Of a DNA stretch of 64,000 nt, positions 14,237 to 50,593 are shown piece after piece. The position numbers were made by a program, and so were the translations under genes. Positions within the stretch are counted from its first letter, which is position 1, and every line of letters begins with the position of its first letter. Origin of the DNA: Epithemia pelagica. Its lineage: Eukaryota > Protista > Bacillariophyta. The stretch lies in assembly GCA_946965045.2 (NCBI GenBank), contig OX337228.1, forward strand, positions 3,286,001-3,350,000, written 5' to 3'. The notes below the pieces were generated by a model that saw only the letters and a list, made by a program, of their open reading frames with translations, was not told the origin of the DNA and searched no databases.

Positions 14237-14559
14237 TCGCCAGAATAGGATCATCTGGGGAGTAGTGTAGAGTATTTGATATTACTGGGGACTAACCCTA
14301 CCCTCTAATCCTAATCTAGTAGCTAGAAAGCTAGTTTTTGCAGTTACTCCTACTAAGCAGTTAGCAGAATCAAAAAGCAGAAGTACCTGGAACCCTATCC
14401 CCAAATCACAATTATTATGGCAAGAGCAGCCTTTTCTGAGCCTTTACTCTACTGCCTAGTATGAACTCTTTAGCGAGATTGCAGTTAGCAGAATCAGAAA
14501 GCATATGTGACCTGGCGCTTTCAGCATTTAGCAGTTATGGAAACTCTGGCGCAAAATTA

Positions 14560-14639
14560 GCCTTTACTGAGAATCGAACCCAGGACCCAGGACCTTGTCA
14601 TTACTAATGACATGCTCTAACCAAATGAGGTATAAAGGC
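14560..14639 (-). tRNA. tRNA-Thr(AGT), variant or pseudogene with a 7-nt duplication
   Basis: Acceptor stem GCCTTTA/TAAAGGC; anticodon stem TGTCA/TGACA with loop TTAGTAA; T arm CTGGG-TTCGATT-CTCAG; TTTT tract just downstream. Extra 7-nt copy (CCCAGGA twice on the + strand) in the variable region and C at position 10. Confidence 0.85.
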
Positions 14640-28919: not shown

Positions 28920-29358
28920 GTGGAAAATGATTGCATTATTCGCCCTTGCATTTCCGCCGTCTCAGATTGTTTTCCGGAAACAATATGATAAGATAGTTGA
29001 TCCTCAATCTCATTTTGATTGAGTCTGAGCTAGGAATTAGGATCTACTCTATCAGTGATGGAGTATATTTGAAGTGTCGTGCCTACATTACTTCGGGTGT
29101 CGATTGGTCTATTTTCGATTGGTGATTGGTGTCCCTGTTGAGGATAGCTGAGCAACCGGTGATTATAGAGGACCAAGGTGCGACCAGCGACGGGAAGAAG
29201 GATCTGAAAGATACGGAGTCATGGACATTGGTCTGTCGACGTGGCAAAAGCAACGAAAGAACGAACAAGAGAGCCAACGCTCATTCAATGGAGAATACGT
29301 AGTTCGATAAGCCTATAAAGAGTTGCTTTTACGGCACGGCTTGTTAGAAGTTTCAACA

Positions 29359-29372
29359 TATTCTCCATTGAA
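29359..29372 (+). promoter_or_regulatory. Primer-binding-site position of element 1 (non-tRNA type, complementary to its own LTR)
   Basis: TATTCTCCATTGAA directly after the 5' LTR; reverse complement TTCAATGGAGAATA at 29284-29297. Confidence 0.75.
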
Positions 29373-29423
29373 AATTTGTTATCATTACACTAAGTACCTC
29401 CGTTGTTGACGTGAAGTACTCTT

Positions 29424-30107
29424 ATGAGTGAAGAGGGCACAAGTGAACGCGTACAAGCTTTATTATCGGAACTGGCCCAACTCACTATCGAACAAGAGGA
29501 TCTCTTACACGAAGCGGAGCAGCGCTACCAACAACGCTTTCGCACCAAGGAGGTGCAGCATCGCGAGGCCATCGCTGCACTGGAGCGACAACGAGAAATC
29601 GAGAGAGACAACGATTACAAGGAAACGGAGATTCGGAAACAGCTGATCTTCGAGGAGACACAGCAAAAGCGACGCACTTTGCTAGCCAAAATCAAGCGGA
29701 CTGAGCAAGGTCCACCAAACTGCGTGGCTACATACCCAGAGCACTCCGCTGAAGCGTATCTTGTGGAACCGAACCAAGAAGACAATTCGGAAGAGAATCA
29801 AGATCGTCGTTCATCTCCAGTGGCTCTCGTTGACCTGATCCGAGAAACACCGGACGGTGAAATCGAAACGGAAACAATCATCCCTGCTATTCCACCACAA
29901 AGAGGCGTACTCCCACGGTGGATTCCAATTGGAACTCGAGTTTGGGTATTGAATACTCTCAAGTTGAAGGAAACAGTGGGACAAACACACCTCCAAGGCA
30001 CAGTGTCACACCACGGAACGTTATATCACTTCATCAAGATTTGGAATCCCATCACAAAAGATACAGAAGAACACCGCCGCCATCGTGACAGCATTGCGAT
30101 TGTGTAA
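29424..30107 (+). CDS. Extra ORF upstream of gag in element 1 (227 aa; coiled coil + C-terminal KOW/SH3-like domain)
   Basis: Intact ATG-to-stop ORF between the PBS position and gag, ending 5 nt before the gag ATG; homologous C-terminus in element 2. Confidence 0.8.
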   Translation: MSEEGTSERVQALLSELAQLTIEQEDLLHEAEQRYQQRFRTKEVQHREAIAALERQREIERDNDYKETEIRKQLIFEETQQKRRTLLAKIKRTEQGPPNCVATYPEHSAEAYLVEPNQEDNSEENQDRRSSPVALVDLIRETPDGEIETETIIPAIPPQRGVLPRWIPIGTRVWVLNTLKLKETVGQTHLQGTVSHHGTLYHFIKIWNPITKDTEEHRRHRDSIAIV

Positions 30108-30112
30108 ACAAG

Positions 30113-33100
30113 ATGTCTCAACAAGGCAACGCAAATCGTCCAGACACGGTTGAGTCTAGCTCCCGGTCGAGTGGACAGCAACGTCAAGGCAGAGGCGGAC
30201 GAGGAAGAGGACGAGGATGGCAGAATCAGGCTCAACAATCCAACTCGCCTAGATTTCAAGGCCAAGAACCGTCGCTTAAAGAATGCATATTTGATTATAG
30301 TGAGGATCCGCAATCGAAGCGCTATCTACGAAACGTCGAGTTATTGATCGGCTACGTCGGTAGTAATTTTGATCGACACAATCAGGAGTTCCAACAAGCA
30401 CTCGAAGCATTGAAACTACCCGACCCAGAAGAAGCAACAAAACCAAAAGACCCCACAGATATGATCCAAATGGAAGAGTGGAAGATGGCGTACAAAGCAC
30501 GCCAGGAGCAAATGGTCCTCTACAAAAACTTTCGGGCAGCGCTCTACAGCTTGATTATGGGACAGTGTACCCCGCTACTCAAGGATAAGCTACAGGCCCA
30601 CGAGACCTTTGGAGAGATCAAGAAGCTGCGTGATGGTGTGGATCTCTTGAAACTTATCAAGCAAATCACATTCACCTTTGATTCCGGACGCATATTCACT
30701 CTCGTCGCCCGAGATAAGCTCAAGGAAGATTTCTATAGTCTGAGGCGACGAAATAACCAAAGTCTCCATTCCTATTACGAGGTATTCCGAGCCAAAGTCA
30801 AGGTCTTGAATGAAGCCGGGATCGTCCTTTACGAGAAGGACATGCTGGAACGAGTGGCCAAGGAAAAGAAACACACAGCACCTTCTTCCGACGACCACGA
30901 GGACGCCCAAAATCGTTGTATTGCCATTCGATTCATCCAATCTTGTGGCAACAAGGAGTACGAAGCACATTTGCAAAATATGTTCTTGGATGGACAGAAT
31001 GTATATCCCAAGACGCTTGCCAATGCTCGTGCAATCCTGGACAATCGAATGACAGGAAAACCAAAGAACAATCCTGGTCAGAGCAACGGTCAGCCCGACA
31101 ACGCCACCGGTGTGGCGTATGTAACAAGTGGAGAGACGAGTTTGCCCGATTCCACTATGACAGGCCACTCCAATGCGACAACTGCAACAGGATCACAAGC
31201 AAGTGGCTCCCAAGCATCAACAACACAGAGTCGCTCAAATCGAACCAAGTCACAAGCCGAGGGTAACAATGAATCCAATCGAGGTGTGCTAACCTCATCA
31301 AACAGGGGCTCATCCGTCAACTGCGACTCACCTGATTATGTTTTCTCTTCCTCTACCATGCAGGCTAGCATTCCCCCTCAATGGCTGTTACTGGACAATC
31401 AGTCCACCGTTGACATCATCAAAGATCCATCCTTATTAAAAAATATTCATTCGTCTGAGAATCCCATCGTCATTCAGAGTCATGCCGGACAGAGGACTCT
31501 TCAGTTGCGAGGACTCCTGCCTGGATACGGCATCGTATGGCATGACCCGGAGGGTCCAGCCAACATCATCTCCCTAAACAACGCCCACACAAGATTTCAC
31601 ATCAAATACGACAGCGACCATGGAAACTCATTCGCCTTACATGACCGAGCCACTGGTAGGCTAAAACACAAGTTCAATCCAAGCCCAGAAGGTTTATTCT
31701 ATCTTGATACATCGATGTTACAGAGTAGCTTCGTAACCACTGTTAGCGAAAACGAAGATTCTTACTCCCCGGAAGAAATTCGTAGAGCCAAGTTGGCCAG
31801 ATCACTCCTAGCGAAGATAGGACGGCCTTCTACCAAGGATTATCTTCATATCCTAAGGCACAACCTACCACCAAATGCTAACATTACTACTGACGATGTA
31901 CACAGGGCCGAGAAGATCTACGGTCAAGATTTGGGAACGCTCAAAGGCAAGACAACTAGACGCAAGTCTCCATTTGTCGACACGTCCACGACAGTACCAC
32001 CTCGCATTGCTGAGGAGCACAAGGATGTCACGTTGACCATTGATGTCATGCACGTGAACAATGTACCATTCCTTGTCACCACATCAAGGAAAATACATTT
32101 CGGTACGATGGACGCCATACAATCAACCACCGATACCAATATTATACAATCCCTGAAGAAGACTGTGGCAGTTTACCAACGTGGTGGGATTAGACCGAGA
32201 ATTGTGTTGGCTGATGGTGCATTCACAAGTGATGATATGCAAGCCAGTCTTCAACTCCTCGGTATCACCATCAACCCCACTGCCAGGGATGAGCATGTAG
32301 GTGATGTGGAACGTTACATCAGGACTGTGAAGGAGAGGATGCACTGTGTTTATAACACGCTTCCTTTCGATGCCCTACCGAAGGTCATGTTGATAGAACT
32401 GGCCAAATTTGCTACGTTCTGGTTAAACTGCTTCCCACATCATACCGGCATTTCCAAAACACAAAGTCCACGCCTACTCGTGACCGGTGAGCATGTCGAT
32501 TTCAACAAACATTGTCGGTATGAATTTGGCCAATACGTGCAGTGCCATGAGCAGCACGATAACACCATGGCCCCAAGAACCATCGGAGCTATCGCATTGA
32601 GGCCAACCGGTAACAGGCAAGGAAGTTATTACTTCCTTAGCCTCACTAGCGGCAGAGTAATCACAAGGAATCATGCCACCGCTTTACCGATGCCAGCAGA
32701 AGTCATTCAACGGGTGCACCAGTTGGCACAAAGTCAGGAAATGCAACCGGGATTAGCGTTCGGGAATCGTGACAACAGAATCTTGTTCCTAGACGAGAAC
32801 AATGAACTGTTTGATGATGATGACGATTCCTATGAAGATGTACAGGACATGGACGAGGATCTGCGGGATGACGATGATCTAGTTGAGAATGAATTAGCTG
32901 AAGAGGACGTGCCTGGTGTTGAAAATGTCATAAACGAGCCAGAGCCCAACCAACCGTTGGACAATTTGGATCTTGAACCGTTGGAAATCCAAGGAGTGGG
33001 GGCAGAAGCCAATCTGCCTGTTCCGGTAGACGATGAACAATATCATGAGGCGCAGGAACAAGACAATAACGATGCGATCAATGATGATGCTTTGGAGGAT

Positions 33101-35223
33101 GTTGTGATGGATATGGATGCTGATGATGAGGATGATGGAGGGGAGCTAGCCGGTGGAATAGAGGAGGAGAAAGAAGAAGAAGCATCTATCACGGTGGAGG
33201 ACGTGGGGATGGATGATGAAGAACATGAACAGGAGAACAACAACCAACCCCAAAATGAACCCCGATACAATTTACGACCGAATCGACAACGAAGCTATGC
33301 TCATCGATACGGGCATTCTTATGCCGCAGTGGACAAGCTTCAGCGTGGACGTTACGATGGTTATTTGAGAGATGGAATCCTGTATTTGGTGTCAACTGAA
33401 ATCAATATGGCAACACCACAAATGCCAATGAGGAAGGGCATAAAGTTGTTCGGTGATAAAGGAGTGGCTGCTGTGAAAGTAGAGATACAGCAGTTACACG
33501 ACCGCGGTGTTCTACAAGCTGTCCACAAAACTGATCTAACTTGGAATCAAGTGCAGGAAGCGCTAGGTTACTTGATGTTTCTAAAACGCAAGCGCTGTGG
33601 CAAAATCAAAGGACGAGGCTGCGCTGACGGGAGAAAACAACGATCGTATATTGAAAAACCCGACTCGGCATCACCCACAGTTGCTACTGAATCCGTCTTC
33701 ATCACTGCCGTGATTGACGCTTTAGAACGACGCGTGGTTGCAGTAGCTGATATACCAGGGGCGTTCATGCACTCCGACATGGACCCCAACGTATATATGC
33801 GGCTAGAAGGATTGATGGCTGAGCTATTGTTGGAAGTCGACTATGACACCTACGCTCCTTTCTTGACCTATGAGAAAGGTCAACCGGTAATTTATGTGGA
33901 GATGCTTAAAGCTCTTTACGGCACGCTTCGTGCCGCCCGCTTGTTTTGGGAGAAGCTTACCGCCGTGCTCAAGAGTTGGGGATTTGTTATCAATCCCTAC
34001 GACTCGTGTGTTGCAAATAAACAAGTAAACGATCGACAGCTCACTGTTACGTGGCATATCGACGATTTAAAAGTCTCGCACGTGGATGGCAAGGTAGTTC
34101 AGCAATTTTTGGATGACCTACGAGCGGAGTTCGGACAGTTGGGCGAAATCTCAGTGTCTGAGGGTACTCGACACGATTACCTTGGCATGTTCCTAGACTA
34201 TGGGGAAGATGGTGTGGTTCAAGTGGATATGAGATCGTATCTTGACACCATCCTACTTGACTTACCGAAAGAATGGATTGGTCGTGCCCGTAGCCCGGCA
34301 GCGAAACACCTCTATCATGTGAACCCAATGGCTCACAAACTGGATGAAACAAGAGCAGACCGGTTCCACAGTGTAACCATGCAACTCGCCTACATGGCCC
34401 AACGTGGTCGCCCGGACATACGGACTGCCGTGACTTTCCTCAGCACCCGTGTCATGTCACCTGATGATGATGACTATCGTAAGCTCGGACGTGTTCTGAA
34501 GTATTTACAATCCACACGCGATTTAATCCTACGCCTAGAAGGTGACCCAATGATGCATCTGTGGTGGTGGGTTGACGCATCTTATGCGACTCATCCCGAC
34601 CTCAAAGGACACACTGGGGGTTTCATGACCATGGGAAAAGGAGCAGTAGTGACGGCATCATCGAAACAAAAACTTGTGGCCCGTAGTTCCACTGAATGTG
34701 AACTCATTGGGGTACATGATGTACTCCCGTCTATCATCTGGACCAAGAACTTCATACAGGCACAGGGCCATGATATCAAGGACGTAACCCTACATCAAGA
34801 CAATCAGAGTAGTATTCTATTGTCAAAAAATGGACGGTTATCCAGTTCTAAACAAACCAAACACATCAACCTTTGCTACTTTTATATCACGGATTGCATC
34901 AAGCGCAAAGAGCTGGATATTGCATTCTGTCCGACTGAAGAGATGGTCGCCGATTTTTTACCAAGCCGTTACAAGGTCGCATCTTCTACCAATTGCGTGA
35001 TATCATCATGAATGTACCATCGGATAGTAAATATCATTCCTCGGCACAAAGGAGTGTGTTGAGGATAGCTGAGCAACCGGTGATTATAGAGGACCAAGGT
35101 GCGACCAGCGACGGGAAGAAGGATCTGAAAGATACGGAGTCATGGACATTGGTCTGTCGACGTGGCAAAAGCAACGAAAGAACGAACAAGAGAGCCAACG
35201 CTCATTCAATGGAGAATACGTAG
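30113..35223 (+). CDS. Gag-Pol polyprotein of element 1, with an apparent 1-nt deletion at 34954-34959
   Basis: PR WLLLDNQST; IN TIDVMH/ADGAF/EHVGDVER; RT KGRGCADGRKQ, DIPGAF, KALYG, WHIDD; RH VDASY, STECEL, QDNQS. Six T where seven restore DFFTKPLQG; the corrected frame stops at 35221-35223 inside the 3' LTR. Confidence 0.93.
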
Positions 35224-35390
35224 TTCGATAAGCCTATAAAGAGTTGCTTTTACGGCACGGCTTGTTAGAAGTTTCAACAGTCCCTAGATACTAGGTAGTC
35301 CCTCTCTATTATTTTCTGGTTGCATTTTAATGTCAAACGCCCTTCGCCTTCCGCAGGTGCTAGCGCCCGGCGACAGTACAGAATCGAGTC

Positions 35391-44301: not shown

Positions 44302-44629
44302 TAATGATTACGTCACATCCGTGGACAGGTCCCTTGAGCTACCACTACTACTCCTCTATAACTTAGCATAGACTATGGACCTAAACGTCGGAAGAGTTGT
44401 CGAGAGTCGACCTGTTGGAACAGAACCAGGAGCCGAGCCAGGAACCAAGCAATAAGAGCGACCAAAGAATGAAGAACCCTACTGACGTGGAGGATTGGCA
44501 AGATGTCGCCCTAAGCGGTCATAAGATCCGCAAAATGAAGGAAACATCTAGTGCTCACTCTTTGTAATCTATAACGAAATTTGCTTAGCTTTGTTGCCTG
44601 TACAGCACGAAGACTGATCCGTTTCAACA

Positions 44630-44643
44630 TAGATTACAAAGAG
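44630..44643 (+). promoter_or_regulatory. Primer-binding-site position of element 2 (non-tRNA type, complementary to its own LTR)
   Basis: TAGATTACAAAGAG directly after the 5' LTR; reverse complement CTCTTTGTAATCTA at 44558-44571. Confidence 0.75.
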
Positions 44644-44671: not shown

Positions 44672-45332
44672 ATGTCCACAACGCAGTCCCCAGAAGAAAA
44701 CAGTACACCAGTGTCACGTTTAATAGGGCAGTTTATTCGGTTGAAGCTTCTGTCCGAAGGGCGCGCCAGTCGACTGGCTGAGGAACACGTTAAACTTGTG
44801 AAGGCGTTGGATCGAAAGTACTGGGCTGATAAAGCTGAATTGGAACAACAGTACCGTCAAGCCTTACATAACGAAGAAACTCGTTATCAACAAGCGTTGT
44901 TGCGCCAAAAGAACAGTCACGAGGCTGAGTTGGGACGGGTGTACCGAGAAGCACAACAAGAAGAAGATCAAACGAATCCGGACCAGCAACCACAAGTGGT
45001 AGAGGAAGAGCAAGAACAAACCTCCACAACTCCACAAGAAGTAGAAGCAGAGACGGTGACAACACCCATTGTGAAGGTACTTGGAATCCACAACTCCACA
45101 AGAAGTAGAAGCAGAGACGGTGACAACACCCATTGTGAAGGTACTTGGAATCGGATCTCGCGTACGAATTAAGACCGGCATCTACTTGTCGGGTCACAAA
45201 GGAAAAGTCTACGGAGCAAAAGGTGAGGTAACGCGGTTTACCAACGACTTTGTGGTCGTCGCTGTCCGAAACCACCAGAACAACAAGATCGAGGAATTTC
45301 GTCGCAAAGAGCACAACCTGACCATTCTATAA
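44672..45332 (+). pseudogene. Extra upstream ORF of element 2, frameshifted by a 64-bp tandem duplication (198 aa when collapsed)
   Basis: 64-bp unit repeated at 45023 and 45087. Removing one copy gives 597 nt in frame: coiled coil then GIGSRVRIKTG...GEVTRFTNDFVVVAV...RRKEHNLTIL*, stopping 1 nt before the gag ATG. Confidence 0.8.
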
Positions 45333-45333
45333 G

Positions 45334-48300
45334 ATGAGTGGGCGTCCGGAGAATGTACAATCGGGCGAACAAGGCGGTCGAGGACGAGGTCGATCAGGAC
45401 GTGGACGTGGTGGCCGGCAAGGAAGAGGACAGCAGGGTCCCAAATTCGAAGGGCAAGAGCCACTCTTAAAAGGGTGCACGTTTGACTACTCACAAGATAC
45501 TCAGGCGAAGAAGTATTTAAAAAATGTGGAGTTGTTGGTGGGTTACATCGGCATCAAATGGCCAAAATACAATCGTGATTTTCAACAAGCCGTGGAAAAC
45601 CTCCAACTACCACCACCAGCACCACCGACAAGGCCAGGACCAGCTGCAACACCGATTGAAGCCAAGGAGTGGGAATTCAACTACAAGGCACATCAAGAAA
45701 AAGAGATTGCTTATGATGGTTTTCGTTCCTCCCTGTACAGTGTTCTGCTCGGGCAGTGTACTGAGCTCCTAAAGGACAAATTAAAGGCAACTTCCACCTT
45801 TCCAACCATACAAGCATCAAGAGATGGGATCGCGCTTCTCTCACTCATCAAGACTACCACTTTCACCTACGATAGCGGTCGGGTATACACAGGTATGGCC
45901 CTTGATCGCATCAGAACGGATTTTTATACGCTCAAGCGTCACCCTGGACAGTCTGTACAGAGCTTTTATGAGGTGTTTAGAGCGAAAGCACAACTTATTG
46001 ATGAGATGGGGATTGTTCTGTATGATCAACTCTACGTTGATGAGTTAGCACACAAGAATGGGCGTACTGGAAACGCAACTGAAGCCGACAGGAATGAAGC
46101 CCAAGCACGAATGATTGCGAATCGATTCATCAGGGCATGCCAGCAAAAGGAGTATGAAGCACATCTCCATAATAACTTCCTGGACCAACACAATATTTAC
46201 CCTGCAACACTCGCTGACGCCAGAGCTATTATTGATGCTCGCATGGGGCGCCTAGAGTTGTCAAACAGCGGTCAACAACAACAACAGCAACACCTTAATG
46301 AGCCCAACACAGGAACAGCGTTTGCAACACAGGGAGAGTCCAATGATTCTGCCCAAAACAACAACGACGAAACACAAGGTTCGATCTTGAATTTGCCCAA
46401 TGGTCATTGCAGTGATTTGTGCTCACATTCGTTTTCCATTACTCCTTCACAGGCTCACATTCCTAAAACATGGGTGCTGTTGGATAATCAATCAACAGTC
46501 CACCTGTTCAGTAATCCATCCCTCCTGATGACACCACCAAGACACACCGACACGACCATGCACATTCACGGCCATGGAGGCCACACAAGCACCACACAAA
46601 AAGCATCAGTACGCGACCACGGGGATGTTTGGTTCCATCCAAACGGATGGGTCAACATTCTCTCATTTCATTTAGTTAAAAAACAGTTCGAGATCAATTA
46701 CATTGCACAATCCGATGAGTTCCACATTTTGCACAAGGGCACACTGATCGACACCTTTCATGCCAGCAAAGAAGGTTTATATTATTCCGACTGGTCCAAT
46801 GCCACTACTGTTGGTTTAGTTACGACGATTGCATCTAATAAAGCACGTTATACTACCAATGATGTAGAAAGAGCATATGGAGTACGGTCCCTCCAAATCA
46901 AAATTGGGCGTCCTAGCGACAGAGAGTTCGCGGCCATCCTTGACCGCCACATGATACCCAATTGTCCGTACACCAGCAAGGATGTGCTCCTGGCTGCCAA
47001 GATCATCGGTCCAGATATCGGCACCCTCAAGGGCAAGACTGTACGAAAGCGACCGGTGCGTGTGGATGAAAACACGTTCGTTGACATCCCTATTCCTGAT
47101 CGATACAGGGATGTGACGATGAGTATGGACGTCCTTCACGTCAATGGAGTCCCCTTGTTGGCGACCATATCACGTCACATTCGTTTCGGCACCATTACCG
47201 CGTTGAAAAGCTTAACCTCCGAGTCCTTACTCGAAGCAATCAAACACGTTGTGGGAGTCTATCGACGTGGGAACCTTCGTCCAAGAACAATGTTGGCTGA
47301 TGGAGCTTTTGATAATGATGTAATCAACACGGGACTGCATGCACTAGGCATGAGGCTGAATCCATCGTCTCGCGAAGAACATGTGGGTGAGATCGAGCGT
47401 TACATCAGAACAATCAAGGATCGGATGCGATGCATATATAACACCTTACCTTTTGAGCGTGTCCCAAGGGTACTCGTGATTGAAATGGCAAAAGCAGCTG
47501 TGTACTGGCTGAATGCTTTTCCAAAAGGAAACGGTATCTTTGATGATGTAAGCCCCAAGACAATCGTCACAGGACAACAGCTGGATTTTCACCGTCACTG
47601 CCAGTTTGAATTTGGGCAGTACGTGCAAACACACGAGCCCCATGATAACTCAATGACACCTAGAACACAAGGTGGCCTAGCTTTGCGACCAACGGGTAAT
47701 CAACAGGGCGGATATTACTTTCTGAACTTATTATCCGGTCGAGTTAAGTCGCAACCATGCAACAGTGGTGCCAATGCCAGAGAGCATCCCAAAACGGGTG
47801 GAACAGTTGGCGCTTGCACAAGAGGCGTTTCCCGGACTGGCATTTGGTGACCGTGACAATCGCATCCTGGCACTTGAATATGATGATGCCATTGATGACG
47901 ATGAAGAATATGTGCCTGACATGGATCAGGATGAAGATCTACGATACGATGAAGCATTAGTGGATGAAGAAATCGGTGACCTCACTCATCTTGAGCAGGA
48001 TTACGCTGAAGCGGTGGATGATGGAGTGGAACAGGGGATGGATGATGAATTGGTACTGGAAGGGAATGGGGCCGAGGTGGAGCTTGAGGACCTTAATGGT
48101 CAGGATGGGGGAATGGAGAATGAGCTTGAGGACCTTAATGGTCAGGATGGGGGAATGGAGAATGAGGATGATGAGGAGGAGGAGGCATTGGAAGCAGAAC
48201 ATGATCAAGCCGTGATGGAGGACTTCGTGGAACAAGCAGCCGCTGACAACCTAGATGATATAGCCGAAGCCGAAGATGAAAGCGTGGCAAATGAAGGAGT

Positions 48301-50350
48301 GGCAAATGAAGGAGTGGCAAATGAAGGAGTGGCAAATGAAGGAGTGACAAATGAAGACGAACACGAGTTGCCTGTTGCTGAACCGCATCAACCACAACAA
48401 CCAAACATCGGTGTTGACGGTGGTGGTGTTGGCGGTGGTGGTGACCACGTGCCTGACCAACCTAGATATAACCTACGCACTAACAGAGAACGAAACTACA
48501 CACATCGATACAACAATGATATCTACGTGACTTCGACAGTCGTTGAAGATTTGTCCACACCACAGATGGGCATGAAATTGGGCGTGAAAATGTTCGGTGA
48601 GCCTGGTGTGGCAGCAGTAAAAAAAGAAGTACGACAACTTCATGATCGGGAAGTGATGAAAGCCGTGATGAAAAGCACCTTGACCAAGGAACAAATTAGA
48701 CAAGCACTAGGCTATCTAATGTTTCTCAAACGCAAACGGTGCGGCAAGATCAAGGGCCGAGGATGTGCTGATGGGAGAAAACAACGAGCCTTCATAGCCA
48801 AAGAAGATGCCTCTTCGCCAACAGTGGCCACAGAAGCGGTATTCATGACTGCCATCCTGGATGCCATGGAACGTCGTGAAGTAGCAGTAATTGACATCCC
48901 AGGAGCATTCATGCAAGCCATCATGGACCCAGGGGTGTACATGAGGATCACGGGATTGATGGTGACCTTGTTGCTCGAGATTGATGACAGTTATCGTCCA
49001 TTTGTTGTATACGAACGCGGTGAACCAGTGCTGTATGTTGAATTGTTGCGTGCCCTCTACGGAACATTGAGGGCGGCCCGATTGTTCTGGGAGAAATTGA
49101 CCGCGGTAATCAAAAGTTGGGGGTACACGATCAATCCGTATGATGCCTGCGTGGCCAACAAAATGATCGATGGAAGTCAATGTACCATCACTTGGCATAT
49201 TGATGACCTAAAGATCTCGCACAAGAAGAAGGGTGTCGTTGACACCGTGATACAACAAATCAAGGATACATTTGGTCAACTGGGTGAGATTTCCGTCTCC
49301 CGAGGAAAGCGTCATGATTATCTGGGTATGTACCTTGATTTCTCGGAACCAGAGAAGTTAATTGTGGACATGCGGTCATCAATTCACGGAATGATAGAGG
49401 ACATGCCACGGGAGTTCAAAGGAAGTGCACAAACACCAGCGGCGAGTCATCTGTTCCATGTCAATGAAGAGAGCCCAAAGTTGGACAAAGAGCGCGCTGA
49501 CTACTTTCACAGCTTGACCATGCAGTTAATGTATGTGGCGCAAAGGGGCAGGCCTGATATCAGAGTGGCCATTGCTTTCCTCAGCACACGGGTGCAGGCA
49601 CCAACTGAAGACGATTGGAAAAAACTCTCTCGTGTTATGAAATATCTGCAATGTACCACGGATCTTTTGCTCCGACTCCGCTGCGATGGATCAGGAATTA
49701 TCAGGTGGTGGGTGGATGCCTCATATGCCGTCCATCCTAACATGAGAGGTCATACCGGTGGGGTGATGAGCCTTGGTGAGGGAGCCGCCATGAGCATATC
49801 CGCAAAGCAGAAACTTGTGGCACGATCATCGACAGAAAGTGAGTTGATCGGCGTCCATGATGCAATGCCTAACATGTTGTGGTGTCGGGAGTTTTTACTT
49901 GCCCAAGGATATGCAATAAAAGAAACCAAACTACTACAAGACAACATGAGCGCAATGTTGCTAGAGAAGCATGGAAAGGCCTCCAGCAGCAAACGTACCA
50001 AACATATTAACATCCGGTACTTCTTTATCAAAGACAGAGTGGATAAAAAGGAGATCCAGATTGAACATTGCCCGACTGCTGAAATGTTGGCTGATTTCCA
50101 CACGAAGCCCTTGCAAGGATCACTCTTCTATAAATTCCGGGATCTGTTGTTTGCTATCCCGCAGAACGATAAATACCATTCTTCGGCAAGGAGTGTGTTG
50201 GAACAGAACCAGGAGCCGAGCCAGGAACCAAGCAATAAGAGCGACCAAAGAATGAAGAACCCTACTGACGTGGAGGATTGGCAAGATGTCGCCCTAAGCG
50301 GTCATAAGATCCGCAAAATGAAGGAAACATCTAGTGCTCACTCTTTGTAA
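45334..50350 (+). CDS. Gag-Pol polyprotein of element 2, frameshifted near 47746
   Basis: WVLLDNQST, SMDVLHV/ADGAF/EHVGEIER, KGRGCADGRKQ, WHIDD, VDASY, QDNMS. Comparison with element 1 (VITRNH vs V-SRNH) indicates a 2-nt loss; stop 50348-50350 lies in the 3' LTR. Confidence 0.92.
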
Positions 50351-50593
50351 TCTATAACGAAATTTGCTTAGCTTTGTTGCCTGTACAGCACGAAGACTGA
50401 TCCGTTTCAACACGACCTGCTTCGACAGTTGACTTTGACTCCTCTGGAGCAGGAAATGTGCAAGGGCCACAGCAAATTAGTTGCCCTAGCACAAACAGCA
50501 TGGTAGTCTATCTCGTAATTTTAAAAGATGCCTCTCAACAATCGCACTCACGGACGAGGTGAACAACGCTTTGAAGCTGCGTAGGTCAAGGTA

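Follow-up and report, generated by a model that had tools for sequence, protein, structure and literature searches.

Self-priming of reverse transcription has been established experimentally for the retrotransposon Tf1, in which the 5′ end of the element's RNA serves as the primer and pairs with a PBS located after the ...CA end of the LTR (PMC10085805). The preliminary description of the DNA analyzed here had named Tf1 as the known precedent, which is borne out by that work. It had further assumed that Ty1/Copia elements are limited to whole or half tRNAs as primers and had been aware of no self-priming case among them. The former view is outdated and the latter is contradicted by the literature, because self-priming was predicted in silico for the plant Ty1/copia lineage TAR (Neumann et al. 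2019, PMC6317226), and the same authors cite an earlier self-priming proposal for the elements Houba and Osr-1 (PMC6317226). In the fungal GalEa Copia elements, a Conserved Hairpin Site replaces the PBS (PMC5445492). The paper that defined the CoDi elements makes no mention of PBS, tRNA or priming (Maumus et al. 2009, PMC2806351), and in the full-text literature on self-priming in combination with diatom or copia, we found no description of such a mechanism for diatom elements. We consider the host lineage, a diatom, to be what is new in the present case, the mechanism having already been predicted within Copia.

The window, that is the entire stretch of 64,000 nt from Epithemia pelagica analyzed in this work, contains an intact Ty1/Copia LTR retrotransposon on the plus strand at positions 29136–35279 (hereafter: element 1). 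It is flanked by the target-site duplication GTCCC, with the 5′ copy at 29131–29135 and the 3′ copy at 35280–35284. The two LTRs, located at 29136–29358 and 35057–35279, have a length of 223 nt each and are 100% identical; the 5′ LTR reads TGTTG...TTTCAACA and has TG..CA ends. Two reading frames are located between them on the same strand. ORF1 (29424–30107, 227 aa) ends 6 nt before the ATG of ORF2 (30113–35011), which encodes a polyprotein of 1632 aa. The polypurine tract AAAGGAG (35048–35054, plus strand) is situated 2 nt 5′ of the 3′ LTR, and the junction ..AAAGGAGTG between polypurine tract and 3′ LTR is common to several families.

Pfam assigned no family to ORF1 at E < 0.01. In ORF2, RVT_2, the Copia-type reverse transcriptase (RT), was recognized at residues 1161–1381 of 1632 with an E value of 1.4e-12, above the curated cut-off. 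Neither Pfam (E up to 1) nor a PDB sequence search detected protease, integrase or RNase H. Inspection of ORF2 by eye revealed a protease-like motif LLLDNQS near residue 425, an integrase-like D644/D701/E733 (GDVERYIRT) upstream of the RT, the RT motif HIDD and an RNase H-like WVDAS near residue 1486. Judged from its sequence, element 1 is a Ty1/Copia element, with the domain order PR-INT-RT-RH as read from these by-eye motifs. The structural traits of Copia elements are also present, i.e. TG..CA LTRs, a target-site duplication of 5 bp and a polypurine tract before the 3′ LTR. Membership in the Tf1/sushi group of Ty3/gypsy chromoviruses, which are characterized by the order RT-RH-INT and a chromodomain, was considered and ruled out by the RVT_2 match together with the position of the integrase-like motif upstream of the RT. 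Pfam searches of the element 1 proteins yielded no match to a chromodomain.

Within the 5′ LTR, the 14-mer TTCAATGGAGAATA is found on the plus strand at 29284–29297, corresponding to LTR position 149–162 of 223, and a second copy is located in the 3′ LTR at 35205–35218. Its exact reverse complement occupies positions 29359–29372 (plus strand) and directly adjoins the 5′ LTR. The former, with which the predicted transcript would begin, is the putative self-primer; the latter stands at the position of the PBS. The first base after the LTR, a T, is the partner of the A at the 3′ end of the 14-mer, and there is no TGG after the 5′ LTR. The helix has a length of exactly 14 bp; the next positions do not pair, being A and A on the outer side and C and A on the inner side. 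It would enclose the remaining 61 nt of R/U5 (29298–29358, plus strand) including the conserved block TTGCTTTTACGGCAC. With one mismatch allowed, dinucleotide shuffles of the window contained a mean of 0.04 matches and in no case three. All of the 32 exact copies of the 14-mer in the genome lie inside elements, in triplets of LTR, PBS and 3′ LTR or truncated versions thereof, and none outside. What the preliminary description had read from this region, namely the exact complement at the PBS position, the lack of a TGG and the pairing of the first base behind the LTR, was seen again here. Its estimate that the match is not a product of chance agrees with the shuffles and with the recurrence of the same layout with unrelated 14-mers.

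One such recurrence is element 2, located on the plus strand of the same window and flanked by the target-site duplication CGACC. Its 5′ LTR of 217 nt spans 44413–44629 and its 3′ LTR 50196–50412. The layout is that of element 1, with an unrelated 14-mer: the putative self-primer CTCTTTGTAATCTA (44558–44571, copied in the 3′ LTR at 50341–50354) is preceded by GCTCA, and the PBS TAGATTACAAAGAG at 44630–44643 adjoins the LTR and is the exact reverse complement of 44558–44571. The ORF1 counterpart of element 2 (44672–45172) is shorter than ORF1 of element 1. Despite the identical LTRs, its polyprotein is distributed over two overlapping ORFs (45334–47850 and 47765–50350); related families have single open frames of ~1700 aa. 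The split is a frameshift, either mutational or programmed.

When the pol protein was compared with all six frames of the 60.5-Mb genome, 30 loci with 63–100% identity were obtained, among them element 1 itself (L001). Twenty-four genomic copies have a cleanly defined LTR pair. The complement is perfect (14/14) in 22 of these, and a single mismatch is present in each of the remaining two. Together, the 24 copies carry four primer variants, TTCAATGGAGAATA, TTCAATGGAGTTTA, TTCTAAGGAGATTA and TTCTAAGGAGAATA. In the mismatch copy L019, pol is interrupted by stop codons. The two LTRs of L015 (G000:C7:3718003-3725958) are 100% identical and both have C in place of A at primer nt 14, and its PBS retains the T; no other intact copy shows a mismatch at the end of the helix. 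This reflects either a recent mutation that has yet to reach the PBS or a cut after nt 13. The 1-kb 5′ pieces of eight further families showed the layout in seven cases and provided two more variants, TTCTTTTTAAAATA and TTCTATCAACAATA. For the remaining one, L062, no hairpin was found in the guessed 1-kb window, which probably missed the LTR. In this genome, the primer is always located directly after CTCA and 71–75 nt from the LTR end. An irregular arrangement was noticed in L003 (G000:C9:2858670-2866514), which has the PBS and lacks the 14-mer in its 5′ LTR region, with two 14-mer copies 222 nt apart at its 3′ end. From its sequence, this locus looks like a copy with a tandem 3′ LTR and a damaged 5′ LTR.

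Among named homologues, those closest to the RT-RH region come from the diatoms Mayamaea pseudoterrestris and Nitzschia sp. Nitz4. Contigs of two other diatom assemblies (L052–L054) contain primer/PBS pairs of 14–16 bp with again different sequences, and three families of Logan contigs provided three more pairs. In L051 (Mayamaea pseudoterrestris, BROI01000014.1), a primer-like CTTCTTGGAGAAAA is present in the LTR, and only the first 7–8 nt of the PBS match; by its sequence, this copy appears to be deleted just inside the PBS, and it was left out of the primer/PBS counts. A scan of metagenomes with the RT-RH alignment yielded 80 loci with 42–57% identity and a total of 398 kb. Using exact inverted repeats of at least 13 nt with a spacing of 45–130 nt as criterion, 44 were found in these loci, compared to 0–1 in block-shuffled controls. 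The sequence context CA-primer...CA-PBS was found for 37 of the 44 inverted repeats, distributed over 35 of the 80 loci and representing 28 distinct primers. Many of the loci without a match are short contigs, in which the 5′ LTR is probably missing. Over all DNA compared, we obtained 55 distinct primer-to-PBS segments with 38 distinct primers and arms of 14–17 nt. One metagenome contig, L083:180-505, contains three arms of 22 nt (CGTTGTTGCACCAAAAGAGGTA and its complement) in alternating orientation and ~60–120 nt apart, an arrangement unrelated to the primer/PBS layout.

The preliminary description had proposed to look for covariation of PBS and LTR in CoDi families; here, primer and PBS were checked for covariation in the elements compared. 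Alignment A1 consists of 18 R/U5/PBS segments, with the primer in columns 11–24 and the PBS in columns 95–108. All 252 paired cells are Watson-Crick (252/252), with zero G-U pairs and zero one-sided changes, and both-sided changes are found in 12 of the 14 pairs. Not one of 500 shuffles reached any of the five measures. When the partner was slid by 1–3 columns as a control, pairing fell to 36–53%, and RNAalifold predicted the same helix from A1 independently. With the double changes in A1 and the 38 distinct primers, the outcome of the check was positive: the primer/PBS pairing is real, is kept by covariation and is widespread in the diatom and environmental Copia clade. Pairs that are exclusively Watson-Crick, in a primer and a PBS that diverge together, would be expected because the PBS would be recopied from the primer in each cycle. 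A stem under selection at the RNA level alone should tolerate G-U pairs; their complete absence fits one arm being copied from the other.

In the predicted RNA starting at 29284, nt 1–14 fold onto the PBS with −30.4 kcal/mol and a z-score of −4.5. The RNA of element 2, taken from its primer onwards, gave the same fold of nt 1–14 with −30.7 kcal/mol and a z-score of −6.0, and the primer:PBS helix was retained in the minimum-energy fold of each of the 55 segments. For the R/U5 loop alone, the median z-score was −0.74, with 12 of 55 values below −2. We do not claim the inner R/U5 hairpin as a counterpart of the U5-IR or 'pretzel' of Tf1, since by this median it is no better than shuffles. An inner stem-loop capped by TTGCYTTTACRGCAC is present in the minimum-energy folds of every family of this genome. 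Nowhere in the LTR is conservation among the families of this genome higher than in the TTGCYTTTACRGCAC block (29323–29337; A1 columns 54–70), part of which is retained in L052, an element of another assembly. The block could serve as a signal for poly(A), for packaging or for recognition by the RT.

The trinucleotide TCA stands directly 5′ of the element 1 primer at 29281–29283 (plus strand) and is invariant in the 18 sequences of A1 (T8 C9 A10). Among all 55 segments, a set selected on CA and not on T, a T is found at position −3 of the primer in 48, and the primer begins with T, C or A, never with G. The helix reaches over the preceding A in 2 of the 18 A1 sequences and in 7 of 55 overall, no more than by chance. 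From mapped transcription starts in Phaeodactylum, the initiator-like diatom consensus TCAH(+1)W was derived (Kadono et al. 2015, PMC4686930). This motif is of low information; its match here fits a predicted +1 on the first primer base, 29284. Comparing the upstream regions side by side, we noticed the U3 motif CGACGTGGCA with an ACGT core, located in element 1 at 29237–29246 (plus strand), ~40–47 nt upstream of the primer, and in many families of this genome ~35–47 nt upstream of it. The position is shared with L007, L011, L013, L018, L020, L022, L023, L060 and L061. No TATA box was found between CGACGTGGCA and the primer. Its core resembles a bZIP site, and CGACGTGGCA is a candidate for a promoter element in these LTRs. 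The sequence TATAAA at 29314–29319 was rejected as a TATA box, since it is not conserved beyond the closest families and would leave no R. Among sequencing runs, three were found to contain this stretch, all of them with DNA contigs of a related sample, and none was an RNA run. Logan contigs were likewise rejected as transcripts. They are LTR-collapsed cycles with terminal overlaps of k-mer size and are therefore uninformative on RNA ends.

A search of 21 distinct host tRNAs against the PBS, a comparison also suggested in the preliminary description, gave no match beyond chance. One of the 21 is an initiator-like tRNA-Met found by pattern; the Rfam scan of the genome had scored 63 of its 1840 candidates, with many organellar tRNAs among these. 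Against seven PBS variants, beginning 0–3 nt from the LTR end, the best contiguous pairing of these tRNAs was 4–8 Watson-Crick pairs, or up to 10 with G-U pairs. The initiator-like tRNA-Met did not exceed 6 contiguous pairs with any PBS variant, and a 12-nt PBS for a tRNA 3′ end with fewer than 4 mismatches was found in neither of the two 5′ UTRs. Among the 21 distinct tRNAs, the matches to the PBS are at chance level. A stronger argument than this comparison is that each of the 38 PBS sequences is matched by its own LTR, so a host primer cannot set them. A side observation concerns a tRNA-Thr(AGT) gene of 81 nt in the window (14559–14639, minus strand) with a 7-nt tandem duplication, GTCCTGG, in its T arm. 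It is otherwise near-identical to L042 and, judging from the duplication, may be a pseudogene.

From these comparisons, the primer for reverse transcription of element 1 is most likely the 5′ end of its own transcript, as in Tf1, and not a tRNA. In the mechanism that we propose, RNA polymerase II would start at 29284, the base after the invariant TCA. The first 14 nt of the RNA would fold onto 29359–29372, closing a loop of 61 nt of R/U5; the pairing is indicated by covariation and the fold is predicted. By analogy to Tf1, the RNase H of the element would then cut after nt 14 and free a 3′ OH, from which the reverse transcriptase would extend through U5/R, yielding minus-strand strong-stop DNA for the transfer to the 3′ R. 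Finally, plus-strand strong-stop synthesis would copy the attached RNA primer and thereby rewrite the PBS in every cycle. The preliminary description had postulated a tRNA-independent, self-priming Copia lineage. This inference is strongly supported, short of proof, by the covariation and by the lack of a match among the 21 tRNAs compared.

The covariation proves that the two arms pair, which is not the same as proving that priming is done by the 5′ arm. The primer might instead be supplied by the host, for instance as a tRNA fragment or some other small RNA, while the 14-mer in the LTR masks or presents the PBS as part of a leader stem. Structures of the 5′ leader that involve the PBS are known in Ty1 and in retroviruses, and the tRNA comparison covered 21 tRNAs, with the 63 of 1840 candidates that were scored. 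However, the primer is copied during plus-strand synthesis, so that a PBS served by a host RNA would stay the same, and we found 38 PBS sequences, several of them in one genome. In addition, there is no locus of the 14-mer outside the elements, the best tRNA pairing is at 4–8 Watson-Crick pairs, and G-U pairs, which would be tolerable if the sequences formed an RNA stem alone, are wholly absent. Hence, we consider priming by a host RNA unlikely.

A different role would fall to the 14-mer if transcription started downstream of it. The RNA would then contain the 14-mer only within U3 at its 3′ end, and this copy could circularize the RNA with the PBS or prime from the 3′ end. The CYC5/CYC3 sequences of Ty1, which circularize the genome, are a model for the first possibility. 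A TATAAA is indeed found 16 nt after the 14-mer (29314–29319) in the families closest to element 1, and the start at 29284 is a predicted one. Yet the TATAAA is not conserved in the other families, and with a start 30 nt behind it, R would be almost absent. A start at the primer agrees with the invariant TCA and with the sharp boundary of the helix. In this genome, the primer is always found 71–75 nt from the LTR end. A downstream start is about as unlikely in our judgment as priming by a host RNA. A chance match, or a palindrome at the DNA level without a role in replication, has the small size of the motif in its favor and nothing else. Against it stand the 0.04 matches in shuffles, the 38 sequences at the same position and the 44 inverted repeats versus 0–1 in the controls; it is already refuted by the covariation count and the block-shuffle control, and we assign practically no probability to it.

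If element 1 is indeed self-primed, this extends to diatom Copia elements a mechanism for which proof previously existed in Tf1 and related elements and a prediction in one plant Copia lineage. The comparative support is unusually clean, with 38 co-varying primer/PBS pairs and zero wobble, and the strict Watson-Crick pairing constitutes a natural test of the copying of the primer into the PBS. Self-priming might be a general, perhaps ancestral, mode of the whole diatom and environmental Copia radiation, in which every family would have a private primer/PBS 'barcode' as a result of the rewriting of its PBS by the primer in each cycle; we put this forward tentatively and consider it somewhat less probable than its opposite. 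If true, these elements would be independent of host tRNAs and blind to control based on tRNA fragments, so that neither tRNA availability nor silencing by tRNA fragments could act on them, and the view that LTR retrotransposons were originally hairpin-primed would gain weight. There is also a practical side. Pipelines for LTR annotation that require a tRNA-type PBS will fail on these very abundant diatom elements or mislabel them, and CA-primer...CA-PBS is a simple diagnostic motif. Some diatoms can be transformed. Some diatom Copia elements are stress-induced (PMC2806351), and taken together, these two properties make the mechanism accessible to direct testing.

With the CoDi elements, element 1 shares the diatom host and short LTRs, the domain order of Copia and the presence of an ORF1 before the ORF2 that encodes the polyprotein. 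Copia elements primed by half tRNAs, i.e. copia, Ty5, Osser and Bryco (1/2 tRNA-iMet) and Bianca (1/2 tRNA-Ile), resemble element 1 in having a PBS without the TGG of a tRNA 3′ end. In contrast to these, the PBS of element 1 is matched neither by the initiator-like tRNA-Met of this genome nor by the other tRNAs compared, and it varies between families. GalEa and element 1 are both Copia elements without a tRNA-type PBS and with an inverted repeat at the PBS position. In GalEa, the site consists of a conserved local palindrome that follows the LTR and has no complement within it, whereas in the elements described here the partner of the PBS is located 59–123 nt upstream inside the LTR and is highly variable in sequence.

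The plant TAR lineage belongs to the same superfamily as element 1 and has the same predicted tRNA-independent self-priming, the hosts being land plants in one case and a diatom in the other. The pol of element 1 is very divergent, with RVT_2 as the only domain recognized by Pfam, and its likeness to TAR consists in the superfamily and the predicted mode of priming. A further correspondence is that to Tf1 and Tf2 of Schizosaccharomyces pombe, the Tf1/sushi type. As in element 1, their PBS adjoins the ...CA end of the LTR and is complementary to a stretch of the same LTR; in both Tf1 and element 1 the PBS lacks complementarity to tRNAs, and the primer:PBS duplex closes R/U5. The complementary LTR stretch is the 5′ end of the RNA in Tf1 and the predicted 5′ end in element 1. 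The primer duplex of Tf1 has a length of 11 nt, compared to 14–17 bp in the diatom and environmental Copia elements. Tf1 is a Ty3/gypsy element with a 'pretzel' of three duplexes, whereas element 1 is a Ty1/Copia element in which the z-score of the inner hairpin is unremarkable. By analogy, element 1 appears to work like the Tf1/sushi elements, although it stands outside their group.
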